A program made the position numbers and the translations under genes. Positions 20,547 through 63,162 of a DNA stretch of 64,000 nt are shown piece after piece. The stretch is from Lytechinus pictus (Eukaryota): positions 13,950,001 through 14,014,000 of the forward strand of contig NC_087262.1 of assembly GCF_037042905.1 (NCBI RefSeq). The letters run 5' to 3'. Each line of letters starts with the position of its first letter. Positions within the stretch are counted from its first letter, which is position 1. The notes below the pieces were generated by a model, which was given only the letters and a program-made list of their open reading frames with translations, was not told where the DNA came from and did not search any database.

Positions 20547-20839
20547 TCAGGTTAATAATCCACATGTAATGCCGGCGACCAATTTCAGCAGGGCGACTAG
20601 AATAATCTCTACCAAACCCGGGGTCGATGCTGCCTTCAGGAACTGCCGAAGCGTATCAAGCTGTGCCTTGCTCAGTTGTACCGGCTCCTTCGCCAGCTGA
20701 CCTCCTATCAGAACAAGCGATGCACACTGATATGTTGTAGGCTGTGTGTACAGGAAGGACGCCATCTTGGTAGAAAGTTTGTCCGAAGTGAGGTCATCTT
20801 CTGAAAAGTCGTGGGCGATGACGCCGACTTTGCTCTTAC
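20547..20839 (-). CDS. Array gene copy 1, coding exon 3 (GKSKVGVIAHDF...AGITCGLLT*); spliced product 197 aa with hydrophobic C-terminal tail
   Basis: ttttcatttacag|GT acceptor completes the Gly codon. 21+280+293=594 nt, in frame to TGA. Confidence 0.85.
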
Positions 20840-22814
20840 CTGTAAATGAAAACAAAATATAGAGATATTCTTATCAATCACTAGCAAATCGTCAATTTTC
20901 CTTCTGTTTTCTTCCTCTATACCCTACCTCAAGGCCAAACACTCTGGGTCAAATGAAGAGAATGAAAGGTCAAGTCCAATTTCTACCAAGAAGCCATTCA
21001 AACTGGCCCTTGCTGACAAGGTTCGACAGGCAGGCAGGGACCACCGGGCCTTGATGTCACGACCCAACACCAAGTTGAATTGTCAATCGAACATGATGCA
21101 TGGTGAGTTGGAGATAAATATTTGCAGGTACATAGGTGATCTTCCTTTCAGAGTATTATGGAAAAATAGCTGAACACCTATTAAGGGCGAAGTAAAACAA
21201 TTTGAGATCAATTTAACCCCAAATCGACTTAAAGGTGACATATCTTGTCCCAGTTAAATTTAAAAAATATATAGACTCACACCTCTCTTTCCGATATTCT
21301 TTAAAAACAAAACATGGGGGGACACCCACTGCCCCCTGTAACGCCGATAATGACGTAATTTGGTAATCACATGCAGTGGTTACCTCATAAACCGGATATT
21401 GGACCATGCAGACAGAACAAGAATTTTAGTTTCAACGCCATTAAATATTCTGACAAAGGAAACATACACTGTACCAAAGAATTAACTGAAATCAAATTTG
21501 TTACTTGTCCTTGTCCTTTCATATTTTATTGCAAAGTTATTTTGGACATTTCTCATGGTAAGCAGGACTAACAATATGAGCATAGTGACTGACTTGGCAA
21601 CTAGTGTAGCCCTGTACTCCGTAATACTCTTTTTATAGCTAAAATAATTGCAGCTCACTGTAGTTTCTGTGTAATTTATCTTCAATATTTGTTATGAAAT
21701 ATCATTGAATTGTCTTTGTTATTTTGAATATGTGATGTTTCTTCGATTGTATTTTTTTGTTGAACGGAAATGAATAAAATCTAAATCTAAATGTATGACA
21801 TTATGCAAGTACGTCGAGGTGCACACGTTTACATCCCCCACGTCCGCTGTAAGAAGTAGGTCGGGGTCGAGCTGAAAGGGGCATGCATGTGGTGACCCAA
21901 CATTGTTATTTTCAGTTAATTTAAATTAATGGGAGATGAGGAGGGAAAGAGATTATATATTACTACATCTTATTTTTATGGCTGATTGTCATTCAATCGT
22001 AGTAAAAGTAACATTGCTTCTCAGCCAATAAAAATCCCCGGTGAATTATCATGGTGGGTGAATTGCGTAGTGCCAATGTTGGTTACCATAAAGGCGGTGA
22101 TATAACGGACATTTTTGTTTAAAATGGGGAAAACAAGAAAAAGGGGAGTAAAATAAAATATAACAAAGAAGATTACAAATATAGTGCCCCGAGTTGTGAC
22201 AATCTGTATTACCCCTGTTAATAGATTTAGAAGAAGTCGTTTTCATCACAACAAAACAATAGTGAACCATACAGTTATTTACCTCCGGTGTTAAATTTGT
22301 GATATAACATCAATGGTGTTATCACAACACCCTTTATATTTGCTTCAAATCTCTTCGGTGTTATGATCAAAATCTAGGATTTCAACACAATAAAGGGTGT
22401 GGTCCTCTAGGGACGGCAACTAAGTGTCAATTGTACACCCAAGTGTTTAGGTTGATTCCCACTTTAAAATATTTTGGCGTCGCCACTGGTTTCCACCATC
22501 CAGTGATATAATGAACCAAAACATTTGAGGTGACGAGATTTGGCGTATCGGGCAAAATTAATTTTTTGAAATTCGAGTGAGCGAAGTGAGCGAGCAAACA
22601 TTTCTTCAAGTTTTCATTACAAAAAGAAAACAATTTTGTCACAGATCTTGAGATAATATTCTGAAAATATTGTCATATTTCACTCTTCTGTATTTCCTTT
22701 TCTTATTATTATTTATTTATTTATTATTATTATTATTTTTTTTTTTTTGGGGGGGGGGGGGCAAGCGCCCCCATCTGTACGCCACTCCAGTATCAATTAG
22801 ATGAAGATACTAAC

Positions 22815-23094
22815 CCAGGTGATTCTTAGCTCTTTTCAAGAAGCCATCGTAGAGAGAATCCGTGACATTGGTGATCGAAAATCGCCTGTTGTCGATGGAA
22901 TGACACAAGATCATAACATCAATCCCATCGAAATCAAACTTGTCAAGGTCACTGACGTTGTAGGGAAGCGACTCGTATCTCACATTCTCAACCAGGTCGC
23001 GCATTTCTCTGTTTATCTGTTGCTTCAGACCTTCAACATTTCGAGGCAGGCTACCACTGCATATGGCAACGCCCACTTTCTTTGTTGCTGGCGC
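22815..23094 (-). CDS. Array gene copy 1, coding exon 2 (APATKKVGVAICS...KRAKNHL-G); uncharacterised alpha/beta (TIR/SEFIR-like?) protein
   Basis: ORF 22810-23112 is paralogous to four other exons. Pyrimidine tract + aag acceptor; G|gttagt donor, phase 1. Confidence 0.85.
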
Positions 23095-23383
23095 CTTGTA
23101 AATCGAAGTCACATCGTGAAATGAAAAAAGGATAAAAAAAATTATATTAAAATTATAAATTCAAATATAGAAGAGGTAACAATAACAAAAATATATATCT
23201 CCCCGGCTTTCTTCTTCTTCTTCTTTTCCCTTCCCCTTTCTTTCTTTTTTCTTTTTTCTTTCTTTTTTTTTCTCTCTTTTTCTCTCTCTTTTCTTTTGTA
23301 CTGTTGCGCTTCGCGTCTTACCTCTTAGCGCGTTGTTTTTTACGCTTTGCGTTTTGCGCACTGCGTTTCTTGGTGCTGTTGAC

Positions 23384-24992
23384 CAACGAACGTAGAGGGC
23401 AGCAACACTTTGCAGTATTGCTTTTAGGAAGGTCCACTCCGCTCAGATTTTGTGACCATTTTCTCCCAGAGCACTTTTTTGGAAGATTGTAGAGTTGATT
23501 TTTTTTCGTTTGTTCAATTTTACTATTTATTATTGAAAATAAGACCTCCAAGAAAATATGTTAAATAATATTATTTTAGCATATTTGTATTTTTTAAAAA
23601 TTTTAAAACAAAAGGTAATCATGATTTTTGTAGTTTACATGGCAATAAAAATACATAGACTGATGACATTTGTGTTACCGTTCTTCTGCTTAATTTCGCT
23701 GCCCCTACCAACTCTACACAAGCTAACGCCAGAGCCAAGACCGTGATGTTCTGGTCTGGCCGCGCCGAAACTTCCCCGGTCACCTGTACCTCGGTGCGCG
23801 TACTGCGCTGCGTGAATGATAATGCTGACTGCACTGCACTGGCATGATAATCTCGACGCGACTCGACTTAGCTAGATATGGACTTGAAAGATATAGACTT
23901 GGTCTGTCATTGATGTGGCACTATGGCGGATGAGCAACGATAAATATTCAAGGTTAGAATTTTAATTTTCACTTAGAGTGTAGATTGTAGTCTGAAAATC
24001 TAAAATAATTATGCTATATCCACAAATCCAACCCACATTTTGCAATCCATCAGGCAAGATCGAATACGACCACTAAACAGCAAAGCCAAGTCCCAGACCC
24101 AGTCTAACGTTAGACATAATATTAGACAGCAATTATCTGGTTCATTATCGAGCTATGTATATTCCGACGGGTCTTGACTTGAGACGAACTATCAAGGGGC
24201 GAAGGTCTATGTCACATCTACTTTTTTCATTTCATAATTTTACAAAAATTTGTGTTAGCATATGCATGCAGCCCACCGTACCCTACCTCAGCACCGACCG
24301 GCCCGGGGCGCCGGCGCGGTCATGTCAGCCATGGCGCTTGTATAAGAGGCGGTGCTGGATTGTGTAGGCGCATTATGGTGCAGCGAAATTTAGATGAAGA
24401 CGTATCAACCTCACGTATACTTGTTATCATATTGATATGCAAAGTCATAAAACTGTTGTCACCACCATGTAATATTTTATGAAAAATACAGGAATAAGTA
24501 TTTCATATTTTTAAGCATGATATTTAATGTAAAAACATTTCAAGCAAAAATAATGATAAAGAGGAAATGAAAATAAATCAACTCTACAATTTACTAAAAA
24601 AGTGCTCTGAGAGGTTTTCGGTGGTCACAAAATGACTTGGCTAAATCCGGGTGAAATTAGCAGACTGGTTTATTTATGACAGAATTTAATCCTGTTTTAC
24701 TGAAGATGTACAAACAAATTGTGACAATAATTTAGTGATATATTATTTTAAGAATTTGGTACATTATTATTTAATTTTTTATATATTTTTTTGTTTTCAT
24801 TGTTTTAATCTACTATTGTCATAATCTATTAGTTTACCAATATTTTGCTGTCACTCCGTGAGTGTATTGTATCGGATCATGGTTTCGTTGGCATGACTAC
24901 CAAATTGCTCGCGCACTTCATTTGTATGCGCGTATCGAGTGGACCTTCCTAATAGCAACACGCTTGTGTGTTGCTGCCCTCTACGTTCGTTG
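23384..24992. mobile_element. 1.6-kb non-autonomous DNA transposon (hAT or P superfamily-like) in intron 1 of copy 1
   Basis: TIR caacgaacgtagagggcagcaacac...aggaaggtccactc at both ends; perfect 8-bp TSD CTGTTGAC (23376-23383 and 24993-25000). Confidence 0.9.
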
Positions 24993-25122
24993 CTGTTGAC
25001 TAATAAATTCATCATTTCCTGATGAAACCCTATGGGCGAAAATTTGATCAACTTTTCTATCTACGGTTGTTTTATTCACCTTGTATTTTGCTTTTTATTA
25101 CCACAACCGACGCAGGACCTTC

Positions 25123-25160
<38 letters not shown>

Positions 25161-25512
25161 GAGCACCACCGCAGGATCTGAATGTCTATGAATTTGCAAG
25201 TTAATTAAAAAGATGTAGACAGGAAGAAAAGGGAAGAAAATGACTTCTGAATAATGCAATTCTAAAAACCCGATTACTCAAATGAGAGGGCAAAAAAAGG
25301 TCGCAATTATTAGATTGTTTTATTCCCCCCCCCCCCGTCGCCCCCATCCATGGATAATAGAGAATGCTTATCAAACGCATAATAACTGGTATATTGGCAT
25401 TAACTGAGGAAAAAATGATGGTAATGATGGTAATAGACATCATACAACAATAAGGGAACATAAAAAAAATCATGAATATAATAGACAAATGAGGGTATAA
25501 GAATATGTCTAC

Positions 25513-25533
25513 CTTTACACTAGAAGAATCCAT
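25513..25533 (-). CDS. Array gene copy 1, coding exon 1 (MDSSSVK)
   Basis: ATG GAT TCT TCT AGT GTA AAG|gtagac. Upstream flank (25560-25640) is homologous to the flank of exon 1 in copies 2/3. Phase 0 joins exon 2 in frame. Confidence 0.7.
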
Positions 25534-27498
25534 TACTATTGCAATGTTTCCCGCGGATAACTAATCTCCTCTAAATGGAAGGTTGATATTTTAATTCTTC
25601 AGTGTAGATCCGGAATCCACGGGGAATCCATGATCGCAGCTACATACTGCACTCGAAATGACAAGCCAAAATGATTGTTGAGGTTTCAGGTAAGTTGGAG
25701 ATCACGGCCTTTTGGGGTCGAGCATGTGGTGTCACGTGCAGTAAATGGATATCATCTACGGATGTCAGGGACCCGGAAAGCGGGAGTGCAGGGGTGCTGA
25801 AACACCCTACAAGATTTTCAGGGGGGTACTGCGTATAGGCAGCACCCCATGAAAACCAGGTTGATAAAAACCCCAAAACAAAAAGGGTTATTGTTCCCAA
25901 ATGAGGAAGATTTAGAAGCAAAAGCCTCATCCTTTTTGCTTGTCAAATTCTTTCCTTACCAAAATTCTCATCACCTTGGAGTGACTTTTTTTTTTGGGGG
26001 GGGGGGAGGGCGAGGGAGGGGAAGAGGCTTGTATTTTTTTTAATCAAACCCTTAGCATCCCCTATTAAAAAACCGTTCTCAGCCAAGTCCGTAGCCGGGG
26101 GGGGGGGGGTTCGATCGAACCCCCCGCGCCAAATTTCCAAAAGTAATAATAAAAAAGGGAGAGAAACAGTTTATCGGGAACGAAATTCCAACAATTTTTG
26201 ACCGATGACCTTTTTTCCTTGTCATTTTTCAACAAAAATAGAATTGACCCCCCCCCAAATTGAAAACCATGGCTACGGGGTTGCCATGGCTCTGAACGGT
26301 ATCAACATGTGGACGGGTTCACGTTCATATATAGTCTGTTAGCAGATGGTCTATTCTCAGATCGCTTGCCCACTGGTCAGTTTGGTGAAGTTACCGTTTG
26401 GCCTAACCATGATCACAGTCTTGGTCTATCGTTTAGTCTAATGCCCAGAATGATATATTTTCAACTTCTTTTACTTACTATTCTTGCGTTTTATAACATT
26501 TTGTTCACGAACAGCTCTTCTTAATATTCAGACCGCGCACGGAGATTTTGTGATACTTTGGTGTCTGTACTCGAAGAGATCTTTTCAGACTCCTATAAGC
26601 TCAGATATATATTTTTAAAAAAGAAGAAATTTGAAGGGACAAAATATAAATTATGTTGTGTTAAACCAAGTTGATATTAGACGCAATTAGTAGGCCTACT
26701 GCCTCACTGGAATTTAAACAAAGTGGTAAAATTGCCAATGGCAATTAAACCAAACCACTGGCTGCTATTATTTCAAGCTTTCAGCTTACGATAGCTGGCC
26801 TCTGCATTTAAATTTGTTTGTAATTGTTTATATGAATTATGTCTATATCTGCTAAACTGTTTGTCACCTTTGTAATTTGATCATTATGTATGTTTGATGT
26901 TATATCATTGTTATAAATTTGCAATTTTGATTTATCAATAAATGCAGAAATACCTGCTTAAAAAATAATAATATACGAACTGTTGTAAACGATAAGTTGG
27001 ATGAGAAAAAAAGTAAAAACAAAATGGCCCTGAATATATAATGTTTCTACGATCTTTACACCGATCCGATTCTTTATTTCATTTTCATCCAAACATAATA
27101 CAAAGTAAATAAATCAGATACAAATTAACGAATCAACTTCAAAAGGCAATTCCTCCTTTCTTTCCTTTTTGCCTGGCCCACCAGAGGTGAAGGCGAGACT
27201 AAAGGCCTGTTCTTTCTGGCCGATGGACGCAAAACGTATTCATAAATCTAGAACACAGCGACGAGCAAAATTACGGGGATGCTTCTCCATTCGTCTTCAT
27301 CCGCTCCAAAAATGGACAAAAATTAGCGAAAGATTTGCGAAAGCATAACGAAAAATAACGAATATTGGTAGTATTAAGCGGGAATGTTAAACGGATGTTC
27401 ATCGGAATCCTATTCCTAGTGGATGAAATATGATGGAAGTGGATGGCAACTCCGAAGGGGTTATCGGGTGTTTTTATATACGAGATGCATACGCTTAA

Positions 27499-27790
27499 AG
27501 GCCTGATCCCACTGCCCGTCCCACTGGCCGAAGGACACAAAGTGTATTCATAACGGATACAGCGGACAAGCAAAATTTCGGGGTGACTCTATCCGTTTTC
27601 ATCCACTCCAAACAATGGACAAAATGCGCGAACAATGAAATCACAGTCGACGGATGCTCAATGGATATAGAGGGTATGAAACACGTATGCAAAGAGTACA
27701 CAACGGATACATTACGTATTCCAACGGATGGCAAGATTCCTTTCCGTTTTACATCCTCTCTGCATCCGTAAGTGCAGTGGGACCAAGCCT
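27499..27790. mobile_element. PIF/Harbinger-like MITE nested among related fragments (27220-28265)
   Basis: TIR aggcctgatcccactgc / gcagtgggaccaagcct flanked by TAA/TTA. Confidence 0.65.
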
Positions 27791-28318
27791 TTACATCCTT
27801 CCTATATTTACGCGCTACTAATGATGTAGGCCATATAGACGTTCCATGTTCCTTATCTTTCCTCTCCCTTTCCGTTGTTCAGTTGCAGTGGATATGAGTT
27901 CTGGAGAGATTGAAGAGCTCCATCATATTCCACTACTACTACTACTACTACGAGTTGCGAGGATGCCCCGAGGATACGGAGAGGATGCAGCGGACGTTTA
28001 CGGAAAATAACGGAAGATAACGTTCATGAGACGTTTGTTGCTCATTTATGTTGCGGATTTACATCGTACATGGCGGAAAGTTCATCCGTTTTAGCAGTTT
28101 TGTGCAGCTCAAAACTTTTTTGCAGGGAAGGACGCTCGATGGACAGATCGTATGCAACACGTATGCAATGAGTACACGATGGATGCATAGCTTTTTCCAA
28201 CGGATGGCAAGATTTTTTCTTTTTACATCCGCTTTGCATCCATAAGGGCAATGGGACTGGGTCTTTAAGGATCCAACTGAAATGTCGACCGTCCTTCACA
28301 AACATGACAAATAAATTT

Positions 28319-28815
28319 GCAACCGTAAGTCATTTTTCAACCAAACTTGGGTTATAGATGAACTTAAGGGACTTGCATGTTATGGTGCAGTCAGGGTCAC
28401 GTGGTAAGGTCAAAGGTCATTTTCAGGTCAACGTTAAATTTTAGGTGCAAAACTTTCTTATGACACAAAACTCTGCAACCATAAGTTCATTTTGAACTAA
28501 ATTTGGGTTGTAGAAATACTCAGGGGACCTGCATGTTATGGTGCAGTCGGAGGTCACATAGAAAGGTCAAAGGTCCTTTTGAGGTCAACCTTTAAGTTTA
28601 CCTGTAAGCCTCTCTATGAAACATAACTCTGCAACCGTAAGTCACTTTTCAACCAAACTTGGGTTGTACTATGTACTAAGGGGACCTGCATGTTATGGTG
28701 CAGTCGGAGGTCACATGGTAAGGTCAAAGGTTATTTTCAGGTCAACATTAAAGTTTAGGTCCAAGACTCTCTTATGACATAGTTCTGCAACCGTATCTCA
28801 CTTTTCAACCAAATT
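28319..28815. repeat. ~156-bp tandem repeat, ~3.2 units, probably the core of another HINE-like element
   Basis: gcaaccgtaagtcac...ggaggtcacatggtaaggtcaaaggtca repeated at ~28319, 28475, 28631 and 28787. Confidence 0.85.
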
Positions 28816-30365: not shown

Positions 30366-30615
30366 CACTCTAAAATAATTGGGTAAAAACGCTTCGTGAG
30401 GGTAATTATGTGTCCAACCAACATTAGGCATTTCTTTGGGGCATTTTTATTTATCCAGTGTGATGAAAATTTTGCCCATTCTAAAGTAATTGCTGCTTAA
30501 TTTTTAACCTTACCAGACAATATGCTTCCCGCACTGGGTAAAATACGGCCCCAAATTGGTTGGACACATAATTACCCTCGTGCTGGTTAAAATTTTACCT
30601 AATATTTTTACAGTG
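30366..30615. mobile_element. CAC...GTG-ended MITE, mostly TA-flanked (related types at 37976-38259, 58719-58927, 60288-60984)
   Basis: ta-cactctaaaa ... ttttacagtg-ta with long internal inverted repeats. Confidence 0.75.
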
Positions 30616-32650: not shown

Positions 32651-32710
32651 ATTGTATTGAGGGTCAGTTCTGTTTGAGAGAACTCTTAATGATTGTTTTC
32701 ACAATGTGCT

Positions 32711-33066
32711 TTAATTTAACATATTCTCATATCTACGTCTTTTACAACAACAGAAAATGGAATATATACATCGTTCACAACAATCACATTGAATACAGCA
32801 GCAACAATTACTAAGTCTATTAAATGTAACGCCTACTCTTTCTGTCCAACTCATTTCCGCGCAGAGAAATCTCCCAAGTTCTTGATGTTGCTCGTGGCTC
32901 AGTTGTATTGGTTCATGCGACAGCTGACCTCCAATCAGAACAAGCGATGCACACTGGAATGTTGTAGGCTGGGTGTGGCGAAAGTTAGACATTACAAAAT
33001 GAAGTTTGTCCGGTGAAAGGTCCTTTTCGAGAAAGTCATGGACGATGACTCCCACTTTACTTTTTC
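32711..33066 (-). CDS. Array gene copy 2, coding exon 3; spliced product 232 aa with Cys-rich tail
   Basis: cttatgcag|GA acceptor. 21+322+356=699 nt, in frame to TAA. Tail CCCCIQCDCCERCIYSIFCCCKRRRYENMLN. Confidence 0.85.
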
Positions 33067-34360: not shown

Positions 34361-34682
34361 CCAATTGCTTCATGGCTCTGTGAAGGAATCTATCATAAAG
34401 TGCACCTCCGACATCAGTTATTGAGAAACTTCTGTTTTCTATGGAGTGGCAGAGAAGAAGGACATCGACCCTCCTCAAGTCAAACTTGTCCATTTCATTG
34501 ATATTGTACGGCAGTGGTTCGAAGTTCACATTTTCAACGACATCCGTCATATTTTGTTCGATGTAATGAATAAGACCAGATACTTTTGAGTTTGCTTGCG
34601 AAAAGCCATGACAACATACGGTGACCTTCATCTTCCTTTTTACAGAGACAATGCAAATTGAATCAGATTTCTCTCGGGAGAA
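34361..34682 (-). CDS. Array gene copy 2, coding exon 2 (FSREKSD...RAMKQL-G)
   Basis: ttctatttcag| acceptor, G|gtacgt donor. Family motifs LPYN and CHSIENRSFSITDV..LYD. Confidence 0.85.
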
Positions 34683-35420: not shown

Positions 35421-35441
35421 TTGTACGGAAGTAGAAGCCAT
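35421..35441 (-). CDS. Array gene copy 2, coding exon 1 (MASTSVQ)
   Basis: ATG GCT TCT ACT TCC GTA CAA|gtaggt; identical in copy 3; in frame with exon 2. Confidence 0.7.
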
Positions 35442-40373: not shown

Positions 40374-41487
40374 CGTATGAGAAGGAAGGCGAGTGAAACG
40401 AAACACGTATGCTCGTTGCTTCTCCGGAAATGGGGTCAATGTAGGGAAAATGTGGTATAGAATTATTCCCGACTTTTTCTTGAATTAAGGGAAAGTTTTC
40501 ACGGATAGTTTTTCGTGTCAAATCTCTAAGTAGGGTCTCGAATATAGTCCAGAAGCATGTGAAAAGGCGGTTATTTTGCTAACTCCTTTCAAAGGGGGCA
40601 ATAGGGAGTAATATTCATGCAGGTTCCCTTCAAAAATAAATTTTGACACGGCTTCCTCTAACAATTGGCGGTATCTCTTAGAATCAGGAACAAGTTTACG
40701 TATATGGTTCACACCCTGAATGTGGGGGGTCCACAAGTACACACGTCTCGCAGGCAATTACCCACACCCCTTCGCTCCTCAATCCGCCTTCTTTTCAATA
40801 TTAACTTATTTATTTTTAACTGGATAATGCAATAAGAGAAGCTAACGCCAATAACTGGATTGATATACACTCTGATTTCTTAACAAAACTAAACTCAAAG
40901 TTTTATTTTAAACAACCAACCAAATATCTAAAAACAGAGGCGTAGATAAATCTTTAGTACATGTTCATCAAGATAATCTTTGAACAAATGTTATACACAA
41001 ATCATATCAACTCAAATATTTAAGAAGTAACGAATGCAAACTATAAAGCATATATTGCTTGAGAATGAAACAATAAATAAACGAGGAAAAGACATAACGG
41101 ACAAGATATTTTGCATTCAAGAATATCAACTGAATGAGTTAAAGGTTCTGATTTGCTTTGAACACAATTTTTGAAAAGAAAAATAATAACGAACTAAGAA
41201 ATAAAGGCCCGAAATGGATATGGATTACAAAATTGCGAGCATGCCTTTTTGCTCAAAAACAAAGTGTATAAACTTAACAGGGGCAAAAAAATGATGGTTA
41301 AAAACGAATAGAAAGACAATTGTTCCAAATATCAGATACATGTCAAGAAACCAGCTTTGTCATAGTGCCGTTAGTCTCAGAGAAAAACAAGTATAGTTGA
41401 TATTGAGGGGGTGTATGGAGCAAGAATTTATTTCCTATGAAATTTGCTAATTTGTACACATTTCAAATAAAAACATGAATAAATAAA

Positions 41488-42957
41488 AATGGTATTAGCA
41501 CTATAAAGGTGTTGAAGCAAAACCAGCTTATACCAGACAGTATGAAAAAAAACATCGATTTGAATCAAAATGGTATTAGCAATAAGGTGTTGAAGCAAAA
41601 CCAGCTTACACCAGACAGTTTAAAAAAACAACATCGATTTGATTCAAAATGGTATTAGCACTAGGGTGTTGAAGCAAAACAAGCTTACACCAGACAGTTT
41701 AAAAAAACATCGATTTGATTCAAAATGGTATTAGCACTAAGGTGTTGAAGCAAAACCAGCTTACACCAGACAGTATAAAACAACATCGATTTGAATCAAA
41801 ATGGTATTAGCAATAAGGTGTTGAAGCAAAACCAGCTTACACCAGACAGTTTAAAAAACAACATCGATTTGATTCAAAATGGTATTAGCACTAGTGTGTT
41901 GAAGCAAAACAAGCTTACACCAGACAGTTTTAAAAAAACATCGATTTGATTCAAAATGGTATTAGCACTAAGGTGTTGAAGCAAAACCAGCTTACACCAG
42001 ACAGTATAAAAACAACATCGATTTAAATCAAAATGGTATTAGCAATAAGGTGTTTTAGCAAAACCAGCTTACACAAGACAGTATAAACACAACATCGATT
42101 TGATTCAAAATGGTATTAGCACTAAGGTGTTGGAGCAAAACAGGCTTACACCAGACAGTATAAAAACAACATCGATTTGAATCAAAATGGTATTAGCAAT
42201 AAGGTGTTGAAGCAAAACCAGCTTACACCAGACAGTATAAAACAACATCGATTTGAATCAAAATGGTATTAGCACTAAGGTGTTGAAGCAAAGCCAGCTT
42301 AGGCCTACACCAGACAGTATAAAAACAACATCGATTTGAATCAAAATGGTATTAGCACTAAGGTGTTGAAGCAAAACCAGCTTACACCAGACAGTATAAC
42401 ACAACATCGATTTGATTCAAAATGGTATTAGCACTAAGGTGTTGAAGCAAAACCAGCTTACACCAGACAGTATAAACATAACATCGATTTGATTCAAAAT
42501 GGTATTAGCACTAAGGTGTTGAAACAAAACCAGCTTACACCAGACAATATAAAAATACAATATCGATTTGAATCGAAATGGTATTAGCACTAAGGTGTTG
42601 TAGCAAAACCAGCTTACACCAGACAGTATAGAAACAACATCGATTTGAATGGAAATGGTATTAGCACTAAGGTGTTGAAGCAAAACCAGCTTATACCAGA
42701 CAGTATGAAAAAACATCGATTTGATTCAAAATGGTATTAGCACTAAGGTGTTGAAGCAAATCCAGCTTACACCAGACAGTATGAAAACAACATCGATTTG
42801 ATCCAAAATGGTATTAGCACTAAGGTGTTGAAGCAACACCAGCTTACACCAGACAGTATAAAAACAACATCGATTTGTATCAAAATTGTATTAGCAATAA
42901 GGTGTTGAAGCAAAACCAGTTTACACCAGACAGTATAAAAACAACATCGATTTGATT
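41488..42957. repeat. ~77-bp tandem satellite, ~19 units
   Basis: Unit aaatggtattagcactaaggtgttgaagcaaaaccagcttacaccagacagtataaaaacaacatcgatttgaatca. Confidence 0.95.
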
Positions 42958-43212
42958 CTGATTTGGACCGTGAGTTTTCTGTTGTGTGGTCATTTGACAA
43001 AACGAGTTTTTGGAGTGTTGAAAGAAAAATGAAAGCCCTTTTTTATATTAACAATATACTATACACGATTCTTCTCAGGTTACAAAAATAATGTCGAAAA
43101 GGGGAAGTCATCAACATAAAGTTAAACAGCATGCTATAATTTGATTTTTTTTACAGTATATCTGGATTTTGTGTGTGGTTAACATACATGGTATACTGAA
43201 TGCATACATTAA

Positions 43213-43925: not shown

Positions 43926-44212
43926 TCAATCACATTGAATACAGCAGCAACAATCACTAAGTCTATTAAATGTAACGCCTACTCTTTCTGTCCAACTCAT
44001 TTCCGCGCAGAGAAATCTCCCAAGTTCTTGATGTTGCTCGTGGCTCAGTTGTATTGGTTCATGCGACAGCTGACCTCCAATCAGAACAAGCGATGCACAC
44101 TGGAATGTTGTAGGCTGGGTGTGGCGAAAGTTAGACATTACAAAATGAAGTTTGTCCGGTGAAAGGTCCTTTTCGAGAAAGTCATGGACGATGACTCCCA
44201 CTTTACTTTTTC
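43926..44212 (-). CDS. Array gene copy 3, coding exon 3, 3'-truncated (ends CCCCIQCD*); spliced product 209 aa
   Basis: Near-identical to copy 2 until the duplication breakpoint at ~43927, where TGT becomes TGA. 21+322+287=630 nt. Confidence 0.75.
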
Positions 44213-45480: not shown

Positions 45481-45802
45481 CCAAATGTTTCATGGCTCTG
45501 TGAAGGAATCTATCATAAAGTGCACCTCCGACATCAGTTATTGAGAAACTTCTGTTTTCTATGGAGTGGCAGAGAAGAAGGACATCGAGCCTCCTCAAGT
45601 CAAACTTGTCCATTTCATTGATATTGTACGGCAGTGGTTCGAAGTTCACATTTTCAACGACATCCGTCATATTTTGTTCGATGTAATTAATAAGACCAGA
45701 TACTTTTGAGTTTGCTTGCGAAAAGCCATGACAACATACGGTGACCTTCACCTTCCTTTTTACAGAGACAATGCGAATTGAATCAGATTTCTCTCGGGAG
45801 AA
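45481..45802 (-). CDS. Array gene copy 3, coding exon 2
   Basis: 322 nt, 6 substitutions relative to copy 2 exon 2; splice sites intact. Confidence 0.8.
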
Positions 45803-46543: not shown

Positions 46544-46564
46544 TTGTACGGAAGTAGAAGCCAT
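46544..46564 (-). CDS. Array gene copy 3, coding exon 1 (MASTSVQ)
   Basis: Same micro-exon and gtaggt donor as copy 2. Confidence 0.65.
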
Positions 46565-49779: not shown

Positions 49780-50069
49780 TCAGTTCAGATATCCACATGT
49801 AATAAAGCACACAAGTCTGTAAAGCATCACTTGAATTCTTTCCGACCAAATCTGAGGTGTTGCCGAGCAGAACTGTCGCAGATCAGAGCGCTGTTCATTG
49901 GTCAATTCGACTAGATCATGTGACAGCTGACCTCCAATCAGAACAAGCGATGCACACTGGAACGTTGTAGGCTGGGTGTGGCGAAAAGTAGACATTTTAG
50001 AAGGAATATTGTCCTCTGAAAGGTGATTTTCTGAAAAGTCATGGACGATGACTCCTACCTTACCTTTTC
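49780..50069 (-). CDS. Array gene copy 4, coding exon 3 (GKGKVGVIVHDF...LVCFITCGYLN*); spliced product 204 aa
   Basis: cttttgtgcag|GA acceptor. 18+307+290=615 nt, in frame to TGA. Confidence 0.85.
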
Positions 50070-50157
50070 CTGCACAAAAGACGAAGTATAAGTCGTGTCA
50101 CTTTTTATGGTTTTGATTAAGTCATCACCATTCCATTTAATGATACTGATGAACAAC

Positions 50158-52991: not shown

Positions 52992-53068
52992 GTGTGTGAT
53001 GGGTGCGTGTGTTGTGTGTGCGTATGCGTGTTTGAAGTAGCTTGGAACTGGCTCTTAAAATACCATAC

Positions 53069-53375
53069 CAAAATATTTCTTAGCCCTTGGCAGGAATCTA
53101 TCATACAACGCATCTGTGACGTCAGTTATTGAGAATCGTCTGTTGTCTATGGAGTGGCAGAGTAGAAGGACATCGATTCCTCTCAAATCGAACTTGTCAA
53201 TGTCGCTGATGTTGTACGGGAGGGATCTAAATTCCACCTTTTCCACAACATCGGGTAACTTTTGTTGGATGTACTGGATAAGGCCCGATACATCTTCCAT
53301 CAAACTAGAACTGCATACAGTAACCTTCACTCTCCTTGTTGGTGGAACAAGACTAGTTGTTTCACCCTTCATTTT
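53069..53375 (-). CDS. Array gene copy 4, coding exon 2 (KMKGETTS...RAKKYF-G)
   Basis: tttcacaatag| acceptor, G|gtatgg donor; family motifs present. Confidence 0.85.
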
Positions 53376-55309
53376 CTATTGTGAAATGAAATAAAACGTA
53401 TTTGAGTCATGGGTGTAAGCAAATAACCTCATCGGGACAACACTTGGTCGAATATGCTTAACACGAATAACACTCAGCGTCGAGGGGTTCGAAATGCAAA
53501 TTATTGAAGGCCTCCCATAATTTTTCCCCAATTATTTATTCTTTAATGTAATAATTATGATAGGGGATCCACGCTCGACAAGCAATGCTTCTTAGCGGAT
53601 TCCCCTCATTTCCATTCAAGCTTTTGTAATAACATTTACCTGTAGTTGATTCGTAATTATGTTTGATTTTTATTTTATTATGTATTTGATGTATATGCTA
53701 CAAATGTAAATAAACTTGAAACTTGAATAGTCAAATTGTCCTGTCTTTTTTAAAAAGAATATTATTGCACCCCGTTGAGTAAGTACAAAGTCATGGTAGG
53801 AAAGTTGGCGGCACCAAGGTGGGTGAGCAAGGGGGAGCATTTGCCCTTCCAGTCAGGATCATCGCCCCCCCCCCCCCCGGTCGCAATTTTCAAAACTAAC
53901 AAAAAATGTATAGTAAATGCTGTCATGAGCATCCTACTCAAATTGTAAAGTGCGTTATAACAGCATTTTCACTGATCAAATTGTGAAAATTTCCCCATCT
54001 AGTGATGGTTAGCTCCCTAAAATATCAGTCATTTACATAAATCTTTCAGGTCATTAAATCAAATTCTAAATTTTGCTCGCGCTTTGCGCTCGCAATGGCT
54101 TTTGATTGAGATAAATAAATGATCTGTTTAAAAGGATAACATGGGGCTTAAAAATCCAGTGTTGATGTCAATATGCACGAATGATTCGAGGTTTCATTAT
54201 ATCTTTTTAGCGAGATACGCATCCAGCTCGTTCAAAGTGCTTAGTATCAACAATTTTCAGCTCACGCTACACGCTTGCATCAATTGTTTAATTAAATATA
54301 TACGTCCATTTATCATCTCAGTATATTAAAAGAATTCGCCTCACTCTTCACCTTATCATTATTTACTTGGTCGAAAAAAAAATCATTTTCAAAAGTCACT
54401 GCAAACAGTCCTTAACATTTCCGTTTTCAAGTCAGTAGGGCCTATATTAAATATGTTAATCCGCGCTTCGCGTTCGATTTTGTGAAACAGGCAAAATAGT
54501 TTTGCCCCCTCCCCAAATGTTCTTTTGCCCCATCTTGCGTCCTAGTTTAAAAAGTATGGTGCCGCCACTGGGTGTGGGCATTTCCGACCATGTATTTCAT
54601 TGACGAAAACTGTTTCATCCTTGTTTTCTGTGATAACGGGTCCCAAAGATCTTGATTTTTCACCAAAATATATATACATATTAATGATAATGATAATATT
54701 AATAATAGTAACATTTCTATAGCGCCTTTTCTTAGAAAAATACAAAGCGTATTACATATAGGCCTAAGGTATTGCAGTGAAACAAAACATATATATTATA
54801 GAACATTGATAAATCAATACTGGCAAGCAGGCATTAACGGATAAGATAATTAAAGGTTATAACCACAAACATGCATTAATAATTATGTAATTCGGGAGGT
54901 CGGGAACCACACAAAAAGACGTAAAAAGATGGAAGTTGTTGCTACCCTCAGTTGGCGCTCAACATTTAAAGGATAGAGCCTCGTCGATCTGGTGCTGCAC
55001 AGTGGCTGCCGGGCCCACGATCAATAATTTTTGGCAAAATGAATTTCAATTCTCACTTTTCTATTTCGAACAATAACATATGGATTTTCATTTTCACAAG
55101 GCTCTTGCAACAAGCTGACAAGTCTCGACTCGCCGTCCCGGCTCACCGTACATAACACTATCTCACCATGTTGCTCAGCAGATCAGTTATGAATCTTTAA
55201 TCATACAATTTGAACTCTATGCAAGCCGTACAGTATTATCTAAAAAATACAAAAAATAGAAATGTATTTAAACAAAACGTTTCAATGATATTAAGAAAAT
55301 AAAACTCAC

Positions 55310-55327
55310 CTGTCTTCTTGAAGCCAT
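55310..55327 (-). CDS. Array gene copy 4, coding exon 1 (MASRRQ)
   Basis: accATGG Kozak-like context, CAG|gtgagt consensus donor; same peptide in copy 5. Confidence 0.75.
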
Positions 55328-58300
55328 GGTTTGTGGGGTTAAGTGTGTGAAATTGATATTACCGGAGTTGCTATTATGTACATGCCGGATCACCTCGGGT
55401 GACATGGGATTGCCAGACTTTGTGCCTACTTAGCTGGTAATAATCTTTGTAATGTAAATAAATATCATGTTATCATTAGGTTTTTTCCTTGGATTTTATG
55501 GCACTTTATATTGTTGACACAATGTACTTACTAATATAGTAATAAACAAGTAACAAAGTATGGGCTACAGCAAAGGAGCACATTATGCATGTTATGGATA
55601 TTTCAATGTTAAAAATTGACAGATGACTTTGATTAATTTGTTTTACAAAGCAGTAGCATAATGGGCACTAGCGTACCTACGGGGGGGGGGGGCAGTCTGC
55701 CCCCTGACGAGTCACAACCCATGCAAGGGACGTATCCCTGCCCCCCCCCCTCCCCCCTGACATGAACCTGAAGACCTTCTTTTTTTTTTTTTTTTGCTTG
55801 TCAATTTTTTTTCTGGTACGAAATCCTATATTTGTGGTTGAAGACTTTTTTTTTTTGCTTGTAAATTTTTTTCTGGTACAAAATCCTATATTTGTGGTTA
55901 AAGACCCTTTTTTTTTTTTTTTTGCTTGTCAAATGTTTGGGCGGACGAATTTGCCCCCCCCCCCCCCTGTGGAAAATCCTAGGTACGCCACTGATAATGG
56001 GCCAAACATTTTGAGATGCACACTGTGACAGACGGGCCTTAATTTCTAATTTCATTTCTTTACTTTTATATCATTGTAATTCATTTTTTATCGATTGATT
56101 GCTCCATTAATTGATTTTTGGGGGGAGGGGTACAGCGCCCCAAACCCCCTTCCCGATGTATACGCCAATGCGATATAAGATTAAACGTTATGCTCAGTGC
56201 CATAGGTTGTGTACATGTATTATTGTCAATGTATACCATAAGCTAACTTTTCACACGCACTCTCACACCCACACAAACACACGAATTGTATTATGGAGGC
56301 AGATAACGTTATTCCTAGATAAAGATAAATAAGTAAAAACAACAACAAAAGTTAACTCTTTAAGTTGAACTGCAATTCCACACTTTTGGAGCTATAATAT
56401 CTTACCAAATATATTTAACAGAAAAGGTAATATTTTACCCTGTCATTGAGATAGGTCATCTCCCTTCCGGGGGATATTTTGAAATCTGATTTGCATTCTT
56501 TGTGTGTATCAAGAATAGCTGCAACTGTTGATGTCTTTGATTGGATAATATCTCGACAAGAACATCATTACAAAACGTAACCATGTTTGGTACGTATACT
56601 CCTTGAACTTAATATTTTTTATCTGAAGTTGTTTGATCTGTTTAACAAGGATGAAAGGATATCTAAATGTAGACAAAAATATTATATATATGCGCATGGT
56701 TTAAGTCTCCCTTTTGAATAGTGTTTTACCCCCAATGTTGTATACAGTCATTCATGTTCCGGTTGAATCTCACATTTGGAATCATCATCAGTATTTATTC
56801 TACAAATAATATAATAATATTGGCTGGACAACTTCAGTTATTATAAATATCAAAGAAAATGGGATATATAGAGACAAGAAGGCCGAAGGGAGGATGGGTA
56901 AACAAGAAGTATACAAAATGACTTGAATGACAGAGTATTTGTAACAAAGAAAAGCATTTTGGCGTGAATTACTTTCGATATACACTAAGAGTTTAAGTTT
57001 GCAGTCTTAATACAACACTGGAACACATTCTCGGTGCGATTTTACACCCAAAGTGGAAATAAGGTGCACCTTATAAGGTGCAATCTTTTGCATTCAAAAT
57101 TTCCAGAAAGAATGCACTACCTTTAAGGTGTATAATGTAGCTTATTGCACCCTTTAAGAAGTTTCTTAGAGGTGTGTAGGGTGCATATAATTGCACACTT
57201 TTCTTAGTGTGATAGCCTTCCAGACTTAACCTGTCAAGAAGTTGACCCGGCTGGCAGGTATCAGACCAAAAAAAAAATCCAAAAACTGGAACAACAACGG
57301 AATGAATAAAAGCTATTGCAACTTTCCCCCAATCTTGAGTTTCTTCTGCAAAATGCACCCTTCAGTGATCCACATTGTTTTTATCTTGACTTGAAAGTTG
57401 GAAAGTGAAACACATCAACCATTTCAGATCATGAAACATTTTATGACATTTGTAGGAAAATAATATCTATATTTAGATTACAAGTTGACAATGACGCATT
57501 CTCTCTGGAGTCTCTTGAGCAAATCTAAAACATATAAATTAAACGTAAATGCCAGTTGTGGTAACGATCTAAAATTGCTGCATATAATCAAATGGAACAA
57601 CCACCAAACTCTTTATCTGTATCGGAACAAAAAATATGTGCCAAATGGTACTAGTAAAAACCAAAATGTGCCATTGCTGAGAAATAGACAAAAGCCAGGA
57701 ATTCCACCCAAATGTCGGGTCTTTTTTTATAAGAAAAGGTGATACACTGCCCCACATGTGCTTATCTATGTTGGTGATCTCTAGTGTGGTCCCTTTTCAG
57801 TTTTAGGTTGCATGATTTTCCCAGAGTTGGATTTATGTATGTTAACCAGATCCAGATCATGTGATGACATTGACCTTGATTTTACATGCTTTTCCATGAA
57901 GTGCTTGCTGTAACTACATTTCTGTATCTCTAAGTTTAACACTTCTTTAAACAATGTTGATTTGGGGGAAAAAAAACAAAATGAATACCCCGTTTGCTTA
58001 AAGACATTGATAAGATATAAAAGTGAGTCATCCGCTTCATCATTTGCAATATTCTTTCAGAGCAATGGTGTTCATATATTGGAACCATCAATGGATGATA
58101 ACATTGTATATTTTGAATGCTTATGAATTGTACTTTTGCATATGAAAGAACTCTGACAATCACTCAACTTTGGATTTTTTTTTAAACGACATTGTTTATT
58201 TGTCAGTTATAAATTATATTGGCATGTACACGAAAATATTGACCAGCAGACAATTCTGGTGGGATTCGTTAACAATGAAGTGAAATTAAAATATCAAGTG

Positions 58301-61004
58301 CAAATTTCAAAAACATGCATACTCTACACAGAATCTAATTTATTGAAATGATTGCATGAAGATAAGAAATCCACTTGCAATGTATTATTTATTCTTTTTG
58401 ACCAGCAGATCTTGCTGAAATGTTTTGTGAAAAAATTCAAATTCAATACTATTACAAAGCTAAATAAAATACACACAAAAGAAAAATACAATACACAGAA
58501 TTATAATGATTGGAATGCATCAAGGTTGGAAAATATAATTGCAATATATAGTTCAGAAAAAAAAGTAATAGAAAAGAGAGAGACGGAGCAAGATAGAGGG
58601 CCAAAAAAATGGAATGTAGAATTTGAACATTGAGAGAGAAGTCAGAGAGCATAAGAAGATGAAAGGGGAAGAAGAGTGTTAATTTGATAACAAGAGCGAA
58701 AACAAACAAAAAACATTACACTCTAAAAAAGATTTACCCAATATTGGGTAAAACGGGAGCATGCATGTTGGTTAGGTGAAAAGATACCCAATATTTATTT
58801 TGTACATTTTACTCAATGTTGCGTTGGAATAGCCCAACATGGGTTTTTTTTTTTAAATACCCAGCAAACATGCGTGTTCCCTTTCTAACCAATATTGGGT
58901 AAAGTTTTACTCAGTGTTTTTAGAGTGTATAAATCCAATTCAAAACTACAAAGCCACATGAATAAATACTGTCATTTTTACACACTTTTTACAAAATTAA
59001 TTGAAATATTGAAGAGAACCGTTGTGATCAGTTTAAGGTTACATGCAAGAAAATAGGGATAACATTCTCAAGAATAGGTGGGTAGATGAGTATAAGCATG
59101 GAGCTATATAGCTCCATGGTATAATGTAGGAAACGACAAAGAGAGAGGGGGGTAGGAGGTTTACGCAACCGCCAATCGATTGGCTATTTTAACAAGACCT
59201 TTTACATGTTTTATGAGCGTACATAATTTCATTTATCAACGATCATCATCATCATAATCATCATCATCATCACGGGTACACAGCAACAGAACGAGAGTAC
59301 TATGTCGCTGTGGTCGGGTGCAGATGCGACATAGAGTAGCCTTAAAAATATCTCGGGCTTGCATTGAGGAAGTGGGTAAGGGTATGATCATTGCAGTCCC
59401 ATATATTATTTTTAGATTATTTATCTTACATAAAATTCTACATTTGAGAATGAATATTACTTAAGTTTCTTAAAATCATATACATGGGATTTCTACCAAA
59501 CTCACTAGGTTGTTGATTTCAGATGGGACTGTGAAGATTAAAATACGACCTTTAGTAGCCTCCACACCCCCTTGCTGTCTCTGTTATATATCCTACACCA
59601 GTTTTCATCTTAATACTACTAATAACAATAATAATGAAATAATGATAATAAAAATAACAATAATGATATTAGTAATAAAGCGTTTATGAGGCGCCGATTA
59701 TCTAGTTGCATATCCAATAGTAATAATAATAAAGATTGATTTATTAAGCGCATAATAGAAAGCTCTATGCACTTTGCAATGTAGGACAGATATTAACATA
59801 TGGGCGGAAATCCCAGAGGGGACGCGTCCCCCTACCATTTGGAAAGGGGGGGACACTATATCAAATGTCCCCACACTATTTTTGGTCTTTTATTATGGAA
59901 AAAAATACATTTAAAGTCGAAATAACACATGTAGGATCCTATCCACGAATTTCGCAATATATCGATAATATACCTTTTTTTCTTCTTTTTTGACTGTCAA
60001 ATATATTTTGGACAAAATGTCCCCCCCCCCCCACTAACCTTTGGGAAGAGATTTCCGCCCATGTCATAGTATGAAACAAAGTAATTGTAAGAATGCGTAA
60101 TAGCTAAAAGATATAAATTACTGATACAGTATGAAAATAAAATCAAGCATAATTAAATCAAAGTAAACAGGAGACATTCTGTCAAATAGCATGTAAATAT
60201 TCATCAATTATTGTAAAATTGAAATAAACTTTCAATGGCGCACTTTATTCCCCCGGATTTAGCTCCGGCTGCTAAAGTTGCTTGGTACACACTAAGAAAT
60301 TCCTGTTCAAATGGGGTGTACGATACGTGCGTACACCTCGCAAAACTGTTGTACACCCCTGTACTATTTGCGTGCACCCTACCAGTCTTGCTGATAGATG
60401 TATATGGTATAGATTAAGTTGATTTGTGATCGAAGATTACCCGAAATAACAATGCACTAACACATTTCACTTTACCTAAGTGGATCATTTTTTTAAATAT
60501 TTAATATTTATGTGATGATGATGATTGTTTCAAAAACACAATTAATTACGTATACATTTGGAGAAACAGTAAATAGAGCTATTATAGTTGAACCACAACT
60601 ATAAGCACAAGTCAAAATAAGAATCGGATCATATCGCTAGACACCTCATCCTCTCTCAGCGCTTCTCGCTGGCATAGCGGGAAGAATCTTGACTACTATC
60701 ATGACTATAGAACAAGGCGAGTTCGAGTCCCAACTAAGGTAACTAAAAAAATCGATAAAGAAAGTGAATGGACCGGAAGTCTCGACAATCTTTTTGTTAT
60801 GTTGGGTGGGGTACATTATGCACCCTGAAGGGTAGACGTGTACACCCTCTAAGGTGCAGATGGACACCCAAAATAGGGGTACACACTGTACACCCCTATT
60901 CGGGGTGTACGTGTGCACCGCTAGGGGTACTCTTATAGGGACAAGCCCTAGTGGTGCAAAATTGAACCCAAATTTCTTAGTGTGTACATTCAAGGAATTA
61001 ATCC

Positions 61005-61150
61005 TGCCGAGTACCAATTCACCTCACATGGGTTGAATGCAGCACGATTAGAGTAAATTTCTTGCTGAAGAAAATCTCGCCATGGTTGGGAATCGCACCA
61101 CGTCCCTCTGATTACAAAGACGAGAGTCGTAAACACTAGATCACGACGCC
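61005..61150 (-). mobile_element. tRNA-derived SINE fragment immediately 3' of the copy 5 stop codon
   Basis: cacctcacatgggttgaatgcagcac...cactagatcacgacgcc is homologous to the 40.3 kb copy. Confidence 0.7.
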
Positions 61151-61174
61151 CCCCGAAACTTTATAATGATTAGG

Positions 61175-61485
61175 CTATAACATATCATCATCGTCATTAT
61201 TCTCATCACCATCATCATCGTGGTTAGACAGGCACCGACATGTTCTGCGGAGCATTGCTTGAAACCTTTCCAAACGACTTGGATGTGATGCCAGGAAAAA
61301 CTGCCGAACATCATCAAGCTGTTTCTCGGTTAGCTCCACTTGATCACGTGACAGCTGACCTCCAGTCAAAACAAGCGATGCACACTTGAATGTCGTAGGC
61401 TGTTTGGAGCGAAAATTAGACATCTTATAATCTTTAAGATAATCTTCTGAAAAGTCATGGGCGATGACTCCTATCTTACATTTTC
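61175..61485 (-). CDS. Array gene copy 5, coding exon 3 (GKCKIGVIAHDF...DDDDML*); spliced product 213 aa with acidic tail
   Basis: tattttgcag|GA acceptor. 18+313+311=642 nt, in frame to TAG. Confidence 0.85.
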
Positions 61486-61699
61486 CTGCAAAATAGAGAA
61501 AGGAAGTATTAATTTTGATTTCGTTCTCCCTTTTTTTTTATCAATGGCTGAGGTTTGAGGGTATGAGAGCGCAAATATTTTGGCGATTAATACGAGTTCT
61601 TGATCGTCTAATTACAAAACGGTTTAATTAAGTGCAGGTATGTGTCTGAATTATAAGGTTGTATGAACTGACAGAGAATGGGCTCTTAAACTTACATAC

Positions 61700-62012
61700 C
61701 CAAATATTTCTTAGCCCGTGGCAGGAATCTGTCATACAACGCATCTGTGACGTCAGTTATTGAGAATCGTCTGTTGTCTATGGAGTGGCAAAGTAGAAGG
61801 ACATCGATTCCTCCAAAAACGAACTTGTCAATGTCGCTTATGTTGTACGGGAGGGATCTGAATTTCACCTTTTCCACAACATCGGAGAGGTTATGTTGGA
61901 TGTACTGGATAAGGCCTGATACAGTTTCCTCCAAACTGCAACTGCATACAGTCACCTTCGCCATGTTCACTCTCCTTGTTGGTGAAACAAGGTGAGCTGA
62001 TTCACCTTCCAT
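61700..62012 (-). CDS. Array gene copy 5, coding exon 2 (MEGESAHL...RAKKYL-G)
   Basis: tttcatcaag| acceptor, G|gtatgt donor; closely similar to copy 4 exon 2. Confidence 0.85.
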
Positions 62013-62138
62013 CTTGATGAAATTAAATATAAAACGAATGAGAATAAAACAGCACCTTTCACATGTCATAGACGGATCAAAAGGGGACAAGCTAAAGTCT
62101 ACATGTAGCTGACATAAATAATTTACACTTGTAGTTAA

Positions 62139-62711
62139 AGGAAAATGAATCCATTGGAACCAGATAGCTTGTACGATAACAGAAAAATCAAAGAAACGGA
62201 TCAACGAAAGTTTGAGAAAAATTAAATAGATAATAAGACAGTTATGATAATTTGAAGTCTAGATCATTGGTGTGAAGTATCATCCCATTGCCAATGCGAC
62301 AAGGATGTGTGATGTCACACGTGAGTAACTTTGCCATTACTTTTGTATATATTTCACTTAAACTGCCCTTTTTATCACATCTATCAGTAGATCCTGTATT
62401 TTTTCTATAGGAGGGCATGTAATACAGATTTTCAAAGAATACATTATGGCTACAAAGTTTGTATCACCATAAAAAAGAGCAAAAAAAAATGATTATTTTG
62501 GGGTATTTTTAGTTGCAATTGTTCACTTGTTACCTTAACACAATCTTTGTCGCACTGCCAATAGGAGGATCTCCATAGCATTAGTGATCGCAATATTCAA
62601 ATGCTCATAACTTTCTCATTATTTTTCAGATTTTTCTCAAACTTTCTTAGATCTTTTCATTTTATTTTTCTGTTTCCACACAAGCACTTGTTCCCAAAGT
62701 CTCATTCCCCT
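62139..62711. mobile_element. Kolobok-like TTAA element in intron 1 of copy 5
   Basis: ttaa-aggaaaatgaa...agcttgt..acagaaaaat versus atttttctgt...acaagc...tcattcccct-ttga. Confidence 0.6.
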
Positions 62712-63144
62712 TTGAACTTGGTCTAATCCAGCAACCAATTATTTTCGGATCATCTATACGGAACTCAGTCTAACCATGCATATTTTTCACAATTTTTCAC
62801 CATCAATTTATTTGTTATGAATATTAAAGACAATATCTATGAATATGCATTTATTTGTTTTATCTGTGGACTGAACTCCACGACCTAACAGTCATTAGTT
62901 ATACAAGTTATATGTCTTAAATGCCTTACTTGTATATAAGACGTGTATGAAAACTATTTTGAATACTATTAATATAGGCTTTCAAAAAAGGGATTTTTCG
63001 AAATGTTTTCAGCAACTTATAGTTCAGAATATATAACAAAATCTTTTTTGACCCCTTATTTTTCGCTATTATACTATAAATTTCAATCGTCTAAAATAAC
63101 AATATAAATCCAGAAAGTTTCCATATGAGCCGTCAGTAACTCAC

Positions 63145-63162
63145 CTGTCGTCTGGAAGCCAT
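63145..63162 (-). CDS. Array gene copy 5, coding exon 1 (MASRRQ)
   Basis: ATG GCT TCC AGA CGA CAG|gtgagt; upstream block shared with copy 4. Confidence 0.75.

Follow-up and report, generated by a model that had tools for sequence, protein, structure and literature searches.

The 64,000-nucleotide stretch of the Lytechinus pictus genome analysed here (C18:13950001-14014000; hereafter the window) contains five intact, spliced, tandem paralogues of a previously undescribed protein family. The genes are already annotated in RefSeq but unnamed, and together with their relatives they define an orphan domain family within a very common fold. The shared domain would be a cytosolic module, tethered to membranes, that binds a ligand or acts catalytically and may serve in signalling; we regard this reading as having about an even chance of being correct.

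Searches with family proteins (tblastn) located exactly five family loci in the window (genes A-E), all on the minus strand and between 20.5 and 63.2 kb. Models rebuilt from the window sequence give each gene three coding exons: a first exon of 6-7 codons, a middle exon of ~300 nt encoding strands 1-3, and a last exon of ~300 nt encoding strands 4-5, two helices and the tail. The first-exon peptide is MDSSSVK in gene A, MASTSVQ in genes B and C, and MASRRQ in genes D and E. All ten introns are bounded by GT..AG, with intron 1 in phase 0 and intron 2 in phase 1 in every gene; intron 2 splits the coding sequence between ...LG and K.K[VI]GVI.... The predicted products of genes A-E have 197, 232, 209, 204 and 213 residues. 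An initial annotation, made from the sequence alone, had described five minus-strand genes with shared intron phases and products of these sizes; rebuilding returned the same sizes, with GT..AG throughout. RefSeq predicts four of the five (A, C, D and E) as 'uncharacterized protein'; its model of gene D has 197 residues and begins at an internal Met in exon 2. The coding exons are:

20547..20839, minus strand: gene A exon 3, β4-β5, helices and hydrophobic tail; 100% to P0134.
22815..23094, minus strand: gene A exon 2, β1-β3 with the HS, ITNV and LYD motifs; AG acceptor and GT donor.
25513..25533, minus strand: gene A (LOC129281453) coding exon 1, MDSSSVK; matches the N-terminus of P0134, GT donor.
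32711..33066, minus strand: gene B exon 3, Cys-rich tail end; rebuilt model.
34361..34682, minus strand: gene B exon 2, N-terminal half of the domain; tblastn and rebuilt model.
35421..35441, minus strand: gene B coding exon 1, MASTSVQ; rebuilt model.
43926..44212, minus strand: gene C exon 3, Cys-rich end CCCCIQCD; tblastn and rebuilt model.
45481..45802, minus strand: gene C exon 2; tblastn, 100% to P0013.
46544..46564, minus strand: gene C (LOC129281465) coding exon 1, MASTSVQ; rebuilt model.
49780..50069, minus strand: gene D exon 3, tail ...VCFITCGYLN; tblastn and rebuilt model.
53069..53375, minus strand: gene D exon 2; tblastn and rebuilt model.
55310..55327, minus strand: gene D (LOC129281464) predicted coding exon 1, MASRRQ, outside the RefSeq model; peptide and GTGAG donor as in the RNA-confirmed exon 1 of gene E.
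61175..61485, minus strand: gene E exon 3, Cys pair then acidic run; tblastn and run X1 contig.
61700..62012, minus strand: gene E exon 2; tblastn and spliced contig in run X1.
63145..63162, minus strand: gene E (LOC129281463) coding exon 1, MASRRQ; run X5 contig joins 63145 to 62012.

Transcription is established for at least gene E. A 1111-nt contig from run X1 covers 60900-61484 and then 61699-62013 without mismatch, spanning the junction of 61485 with 61700, and a contig from run X5 joins 62012 to 63145 across intron 1. On the plus strand each skipped interval begins with CT and ends with AC, corresponding to GT..AG on the gene strand. The initial annotation had called for the predicted junctions to be checked in transcripts, and both junctions of gene E are exact in these assembled contigs. 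The X1 record does not state that the run is RNA; we read it as RNA because it shows no depth over the introns. Upstream of 62013, at the acceptor of gene E exon 2, the X1 contig runs on for 29 letters that have no counterpart in the window. This extension, set against the X5 join to 63145, suggests alternative first exons or promoters for gene E. For gene D, the run index gave shares of 0.16-0.27 in the same studies; exons and repeats are both possible sources. At 62160-62663 (within gene E intron 1) and at 60984-61067 (just downstream of gene E), the depth of contigs and reads is very high, accompanied by numerous variant letters and loose ends; these peaks look like dispersed, transcribed repeats.

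The array combines old divergence with recent duplication. Genes B and C are 96.6% identical over 3.4 kb, introns included, and are a very recent duplicate. Their homology stops at 32781/43927, which is the stop codon of gene C, and gene B continues for 23 codons past this breakpoint (32711-32781) into a Cys- and Arg-rich end. Since the homology ends at the stop codon of C, gene B gained the longer Cys-rich tail through a tail swap made by the duplication breakpoint. For pairs other than B/C, dN/dS in the core is 0.08-0.48 at dS values of 0.26 to >1; the domain core is under purifying, not diversifying, selection, and the tails diverge faster. The near-identity of B and C, together with the dN/dS, tail and breakpoint comparisons, bears out the local duplication and variable tails that had been proposed from the sequence. 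A maximum-likelihood tree joins gene A to S. purpuratus LOC105445386 (support 97). Two L. variegatus genes group with B and C (support 100), and two others from the same species with D and E (support 98). Because the window genes interleave with L. variegatus and S. purpuratus orthologues, the array is older than the Lytechinus/Strongylocentrotus split and is still duplicating. A further same-strand copy lies 19-31 kb past the window end (C18:14033114-14045078), so the array has at least six members. This copy consists of one N-terminal-exon match and one C-terminal-exon match ~11.4 kb apart, which may belong to a single gene interrupted by a long intron or represent two fragments. Within the array, at 41486-42958, the B/C spacer holds a satellite in which a 77-bp unit occurs 19 times (91% matches; 309-bp higher-order period).

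That the family is uncharacterised, as the initial annotation had it, is supported by the database and literature searches. Pfam returned no match with single proteins (E ≤ 10) or with all 38 rows of the family alignment (E ≤ 1). No PDB sequence was matched by a single sequence, a profile search of PDB sequences gave chance-level matches only (E 0.24 or worse), and neither the LOC identifiers nor keywords led to any published work on the family. A language-model atlas returned unnamed clusters only, except for one chordate cluster auto-labelled 'Golgin'. The family itself is large. A six-frame profile search of the whole L. pictus assembly matched the N-terminal exon ~41 times and the C-terminal exon ~40 times, always with the exon break in the same place, in genomic clusters on C3 (45.8 Mb, 74.0 Mb), C10 (19.3-19.4 Mb), C9, C12 and C18. 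A phmmer search with gene D exon 2 against 1.84 billion cluster representatives gave 97 matches at E ≤ 1e-3, 69 of them at E ≤ 1e-10. The named members are all 'uncharacterized' and come from echinoids (Lytechinus, Strongylocentrotus, Diadema) and from anuran frogs (Xenopus, Bombina, Leptobrachium, Lithobates, Pyxicephalus, Ascaphus, Spea, Bufo and others); many of the proteins, in frogs and urchins, carry 2-6 tandem copies of the domain. The likeness to expanded amphibian families, suggested in the initial annotation, is real, with dozens of frog proteins in the family. AlphaFold-DB cluster matches add weaker look-alikes, listed without organisms, as tentative members. A metagenome contig scan found no relative. 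No viral relative was found in IMG/VR (pattern and tblastn searches), and BFVD returned only generic folds; a viral origin or carrier was set aside on these results.

An AlphaFold2 model computed with a 41-sequence alignment (pLDDT 90.9, pTM 0.83) predicts a ~160-residue flavodoxin/CheY-like α/β domain of five strands, each followed by a helix or loop, and after it a helical linker and a short tail:

Residues 15-21: β1
Residues 25-38: α-helix
Residues 43-50: β2
Residues 55-58: short α-helix
Residues 68-74: β3
Residues 75-92: long loop
Residues 93-101: α-helix
Residues 106-111: β4
Residues 123-140: α-helix
Residues 143-146: β5
Residues 159-170: α-helix
Residues 176-193: tail helix

The five hydrophobic motifs singled out in the initial annotation coincide with strands β1-β5 of the model, and the flavodoxin-like layout proposed there is what the model returns at this pLDDT: five strands alternating with helices, the β2-β3 connection being mostly loop. 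Searches of the structure libraries all yielded folds of the flavodoxin-like, receiver and G-domain kinds, which are generic relatives only. The linker between helix 1 and strand 2 is only four residues long and the crossover between strands 2 and 3 is made by a helix or loop; because of these features we infer an all-parallel sheet of the flavodoxin/CheY type, not a TRAFAC G domain. The sheet is thus apparently all-parallel on the evidence of these connections. When two copies of the core (residues 10-175) were submitted as a homodimer, the prediction returned no answer (score 0.00), which counts neither way.

Conservation was examined over 127 complete domain copies from urchins, frogs and one bacterium. 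The most conserved positions, in the numbering of P0003 (position in the conservation table plus 1), are:

Ser/Thr21: 118/127
His73: 123/127
Ser/Thr74: 127/127
Thr83: 122/127
Asp/Asn84: 125/127
Tyr90: 125/127
Leu94: 122/127
Gly102: 125/127
Asp112: 122/127
Gln134: 101/109 copies with a residue there
Gly148: 89/102 copies with a residue there

Every conserved polar residue is located either in the β3-α3 loop or at, or immediately behind, the C-terminal end of strand 1, 3, 4 or 5. In doubly wound α/β folds, ligands are bound and catalytic residues are placed at the C-terminal strand ends. Two sequence subtypes carry the set: urchin-type domains and the bacterial copy have LPYN, LCHSxxNRRF, ITDV and [VI]HDF, and frog-type domains have ILYH[TS]xxxGRLNITDV and VVLDDL. 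Overall identity between urchin and frog domains is ~20%, with the polar set kept. Two known enzyme signatures were considered and rejected. The urchin sequence C72-H-S-I-x-N-R78 resembles the C-X5-R motif of Cys-based phosphatases; Cys72 is replaced by Tyr and Arg78 by Gly in about a quarter of the domains (the frog type), and we dropped this reading because both residues are subtype-specific. For an SGNH/GDSL hydrolase, Ser/Thr21 after strand 1 is conserved, but both GDS (block I) and DxxH (block V) are missing, the conserved His comes after strand 3, and the structural TM-score is only 0.57.

The C-terminal tails differ from gene to gene:

Gene A: hydrophobic; the best 17-residue window in the last 60 residues has a Kyte-Doolittle mean of 2.45
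Gene B: 11 Cys in the last 35 residues
Gene C: 6 Cys in the last 35 residues
Gene D: short, hydrophobic, Cys-containing end, less transmembrane-like than A
Gene E: Cys pair followed by an acidic run

Across the family, 22 of 131 members end in a hydrophobic, transmembrane-like 17-mer and 18 others in a Cys cluster (≥3 Cys at the end). These tails look like tail anchors or S-acylation sites. Fusion partners provide a second indication of location. In two genera, in P0058 (Lytechinus) and P0044 (Diadema), the domain is fused C-terminal to a PAP2 lipid phosphatase, after its last helix; the C-terminus of PAP2 enzymes is cytosolic. The membrane-type tails and this fusion would place the domain on the cytosolic face of a membrane. 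Other partners are a Death domain in S. purpuratus, an AIG1 G domain, P2RX7_C in Bombina, kinesin motors in two Xenopus species, and coiled coils in some relatives; the Death, AIG1, P2RX7_C and kinesin partners are cytosolic too. Weak matches to KAP_NTPase (22.2 bits) and AAA_16 over the domain itself in two frog proteins were taken as similarity in strand-helix pattern, because there is no P-loop.

Taken together, the strand-end residues, the anchor-like or S-acylation-like tails and the PAP2 fusion lead us to propose that the domain acts on the cytosolic membrane face, where it would bind a small ligand or carry out hydrolysis. The obvious first guess would be a ligand that bears phosphate, and the variable tail would set the target membrane. 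The weakest step of the proposal is its context, which may be signalling or cell death and defence, as suggested by the rare Death, AIG1 and P2RX7_C fusions and by birth-and-death evolution in clusters. An immune role of the family is neither supported nor excluded, the only hints to it being the rare Death and AIG1 fusions.

Several observations weigh against the proposed module. The ligand pocket that the conserved polar residues would form is a matter of spatial clustering read from secondary-structure positions only, and the same residues could be structural. The gene E tail is acidic, its membrane binding is not obvious, and many members have no clear anchor. The Death-domain fusion scores 21.8 bits, below the Pfam cut-off of 22.6, with UniProt also calling Death, and some of the fusions may be gene-model mergers of neighbouring genes. 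Finally, the rRNA-depleted RNA-seq runs X9 and X10 contain no reads on gene E exons among the ~6% of reads sampled, a result we consider uninformative.

The strongest competitor, still clearly less probable than a ligand-binding or catalytic module, is a non-enzymatic scaffold or adaptor in which the conserved residues only stabilise the long β3-α3 loop and the protein acts through protein-protein contacts, for example as repeated modules in frogs. The chains with 2-6 domains in frogs and urchins, the coiled-coil and Death partners of some relatives, and the failure to match any known catalytic signature are all in keeping with a scaffold; it accounts less readily for a conserved set that is polar, sits at the topological ligand site and has survived from urchin to frog at ~20% identity. 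We consider it unlikely that the domain is a P-loop-less pseudo-GTPase that has kinship with the IRG, GIMAP or Ras-like G domains and serves as a membrane-bound regulatory subunit. G-domain folds are among the structural relatives, but the GxxxxGK[ST], DxxG and [NT]KxD motifs are absent from urchin-type, frog-type and bacterial sequences alike, and no G-domain Pfam match passes threshold among the 38 members scanned. The model has five strands, not six, with a probable parallel β-α-β crossover in place of the antiparallel strand 2 of TRAFAC GTPases, and CheY-like domains superpose at lower rmsd (2.6-3.0 Å versus 3-4 Å).

The initial annotation had favoured, with a question mark, a TIR/SEFIR-like domain; in its full form this would be a divergent innate-immune adaptor or NADase that signals by oligomerisation or NAD+ cleavage. 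This reading did not hold up, and we now regard it as improbable. No match to TIR (PF01582 / PF13676) was found at E ≤ 10 with single proteins, nor at E ≤ 1 across the 38 members, and the Pfam scans likewise gave none to SEFIR (PF08357). Comparison by hhalign of the 127-domain family alignment with five L. pictus TIR domains returned a probability of 0.07%, with sensitivity limited by the thin TIR alignment. A TIR domain ranks only 31st by structure, with 30 structures of other families scoring higher. The conservation table of the 127 domains shows no invariant Glu and no RDxxPG-like BB loop, strand 2 being followed by LPYN in urchins and by YIS in frogs; the His/Thr/Asp set has no TIR counterpart, and selection on the core is purifying rather than diversifying. 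Least probable of all, in our judgement, is an ordinary FMN-binding redox protein of the flavodoxin, NrdI or FMN-reductase type. Such proteins are the top Foldseek matches in PDB and Swiss-Prot (E about 1e-4), one urchin member is auto-named 'Flavodoxin domain-containing protein' in UniProt, and one member matches Flavodoxin_5 at E 0.12. Those structural matches, however, have TM-scores <0.5 and 11-20% identity, and no Pfam flavodoxin match is above threshold (Flavodoxin_5 scores 13 bits, the cut-off being 27). Strand 1 leads into a [CF]-[ST]-[SR]-[SA] loop and not into the phosphate loop T/S-x-T-G-x-T, and the patchy, lineage-expanded spread is unlike that of a housekeeping redox protein.

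The domain has a single prokaryotic occurrence. Among one genome for each of ~185,000 prokaryotic species, the family was found only in Endozoicomonas elysicola DSM 22380, where the gene lies on a 5.57-Mb scaffold; the remaining 62 Endozoicomonadaceae genomes are negative, leaving the copy in 1 of 63. The bacterial gene is intronless, encodes 259 residues (8001-8780 of JOJP01000001.1:1655218-1671997), and lies in a stretch of 38-40% GC between flanking genes of ~50% GC, next to a 1213-residue open reading frame with no Pfam domain. The C-terminal tail of its product is still amphipathic and hydrophobic, and the N-terminus carries a polar extension of ~50 residues. The tree places this copy on the echinoid side of the frog/echinoid split, which fits a candidate single transfer of the gene from an animal to its symbiont. 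Host-derived apoptosis inhibitors have been acquired by a bacterium related to E. elysicola (PMC11521996). In its boldest form, which we think rather unlikely although slightly less so than the pseudo-GTPase, the family would comprise membrane-tethered enzymes or small-molecule sensors of a new class, built on a His-Thr-Asp pocket and acting in deuterostome cell-death or innate-immune signalling, its echinoid/anuran/Endozoicomonas spread would be due to horizontal transfer, and the bacterial copy would be a host-mimicking effector.

Outside the array, the window contains a 429-residue open frame at 14625-15914 (minus strand), presumably resembling the C-terminal part of a non-LTR retrotransposon ORF2.

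At present this is a well-delimited orphan family and not a demonstrated new mechanism. Describing the domain would add to what can be said of the 'uncharacterized LOC' fraction of echinoderm and amphibian genomes, where it accounts for ~40 genes in one urchin and for multi-domain giants in frogs. The family offers a confident predicted fold, candidate functional residues and a testable membrane-targeting logic, and the conserved putative pocket together with the PAP2, Death, AIG1 and P2RX7_C fusions yields concrete hypotheses for biochemistry. Its main assets are the residue-level hypothesis, the unusual echinoid/anuran/symbiont distribution and an easy experimental entry.

The known systems nearest to the family include the CheY-like receivers, such as the CpaE N-terminal domain (4dn6) and the response regulators 3cnb and 3snk. 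The receiver pocket positions are occupied in the family by Ser/Thr21, His73, Asp112 and Gly148: His73 stands where receivers carry their phospho-acceptor Asp, at the strand 3 end, and Asp112 where they have Thr/Ser, behind strand 4. The family lacks the acidic pair that follows strand 1 in receivers and the Lys that follows strand 5, no Response_reg (PF00072) match was obtained, and the family is eukaryotic and bears a membrane tail. Flavodoxins, NrdI and the SsuE-MsuE FMN reductases have the α/β/α sandwich in common with it, but their FMN-binding loops are absent here. The IRG, GIMAP (AIG1) and small GTPases and the pseudo-GTPase CENP-M differ in that the family has no G motifs, five apparently all-parallel strands and no detectable sequence similarity to them. 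TIR domains are alike in flavodoxin-like fold class and in size and are also found with Death-fold partners in invertebrate immunity, but they carry a catalytic Glu and a BB loop, and the family has its own conserved polar set with neither of these.

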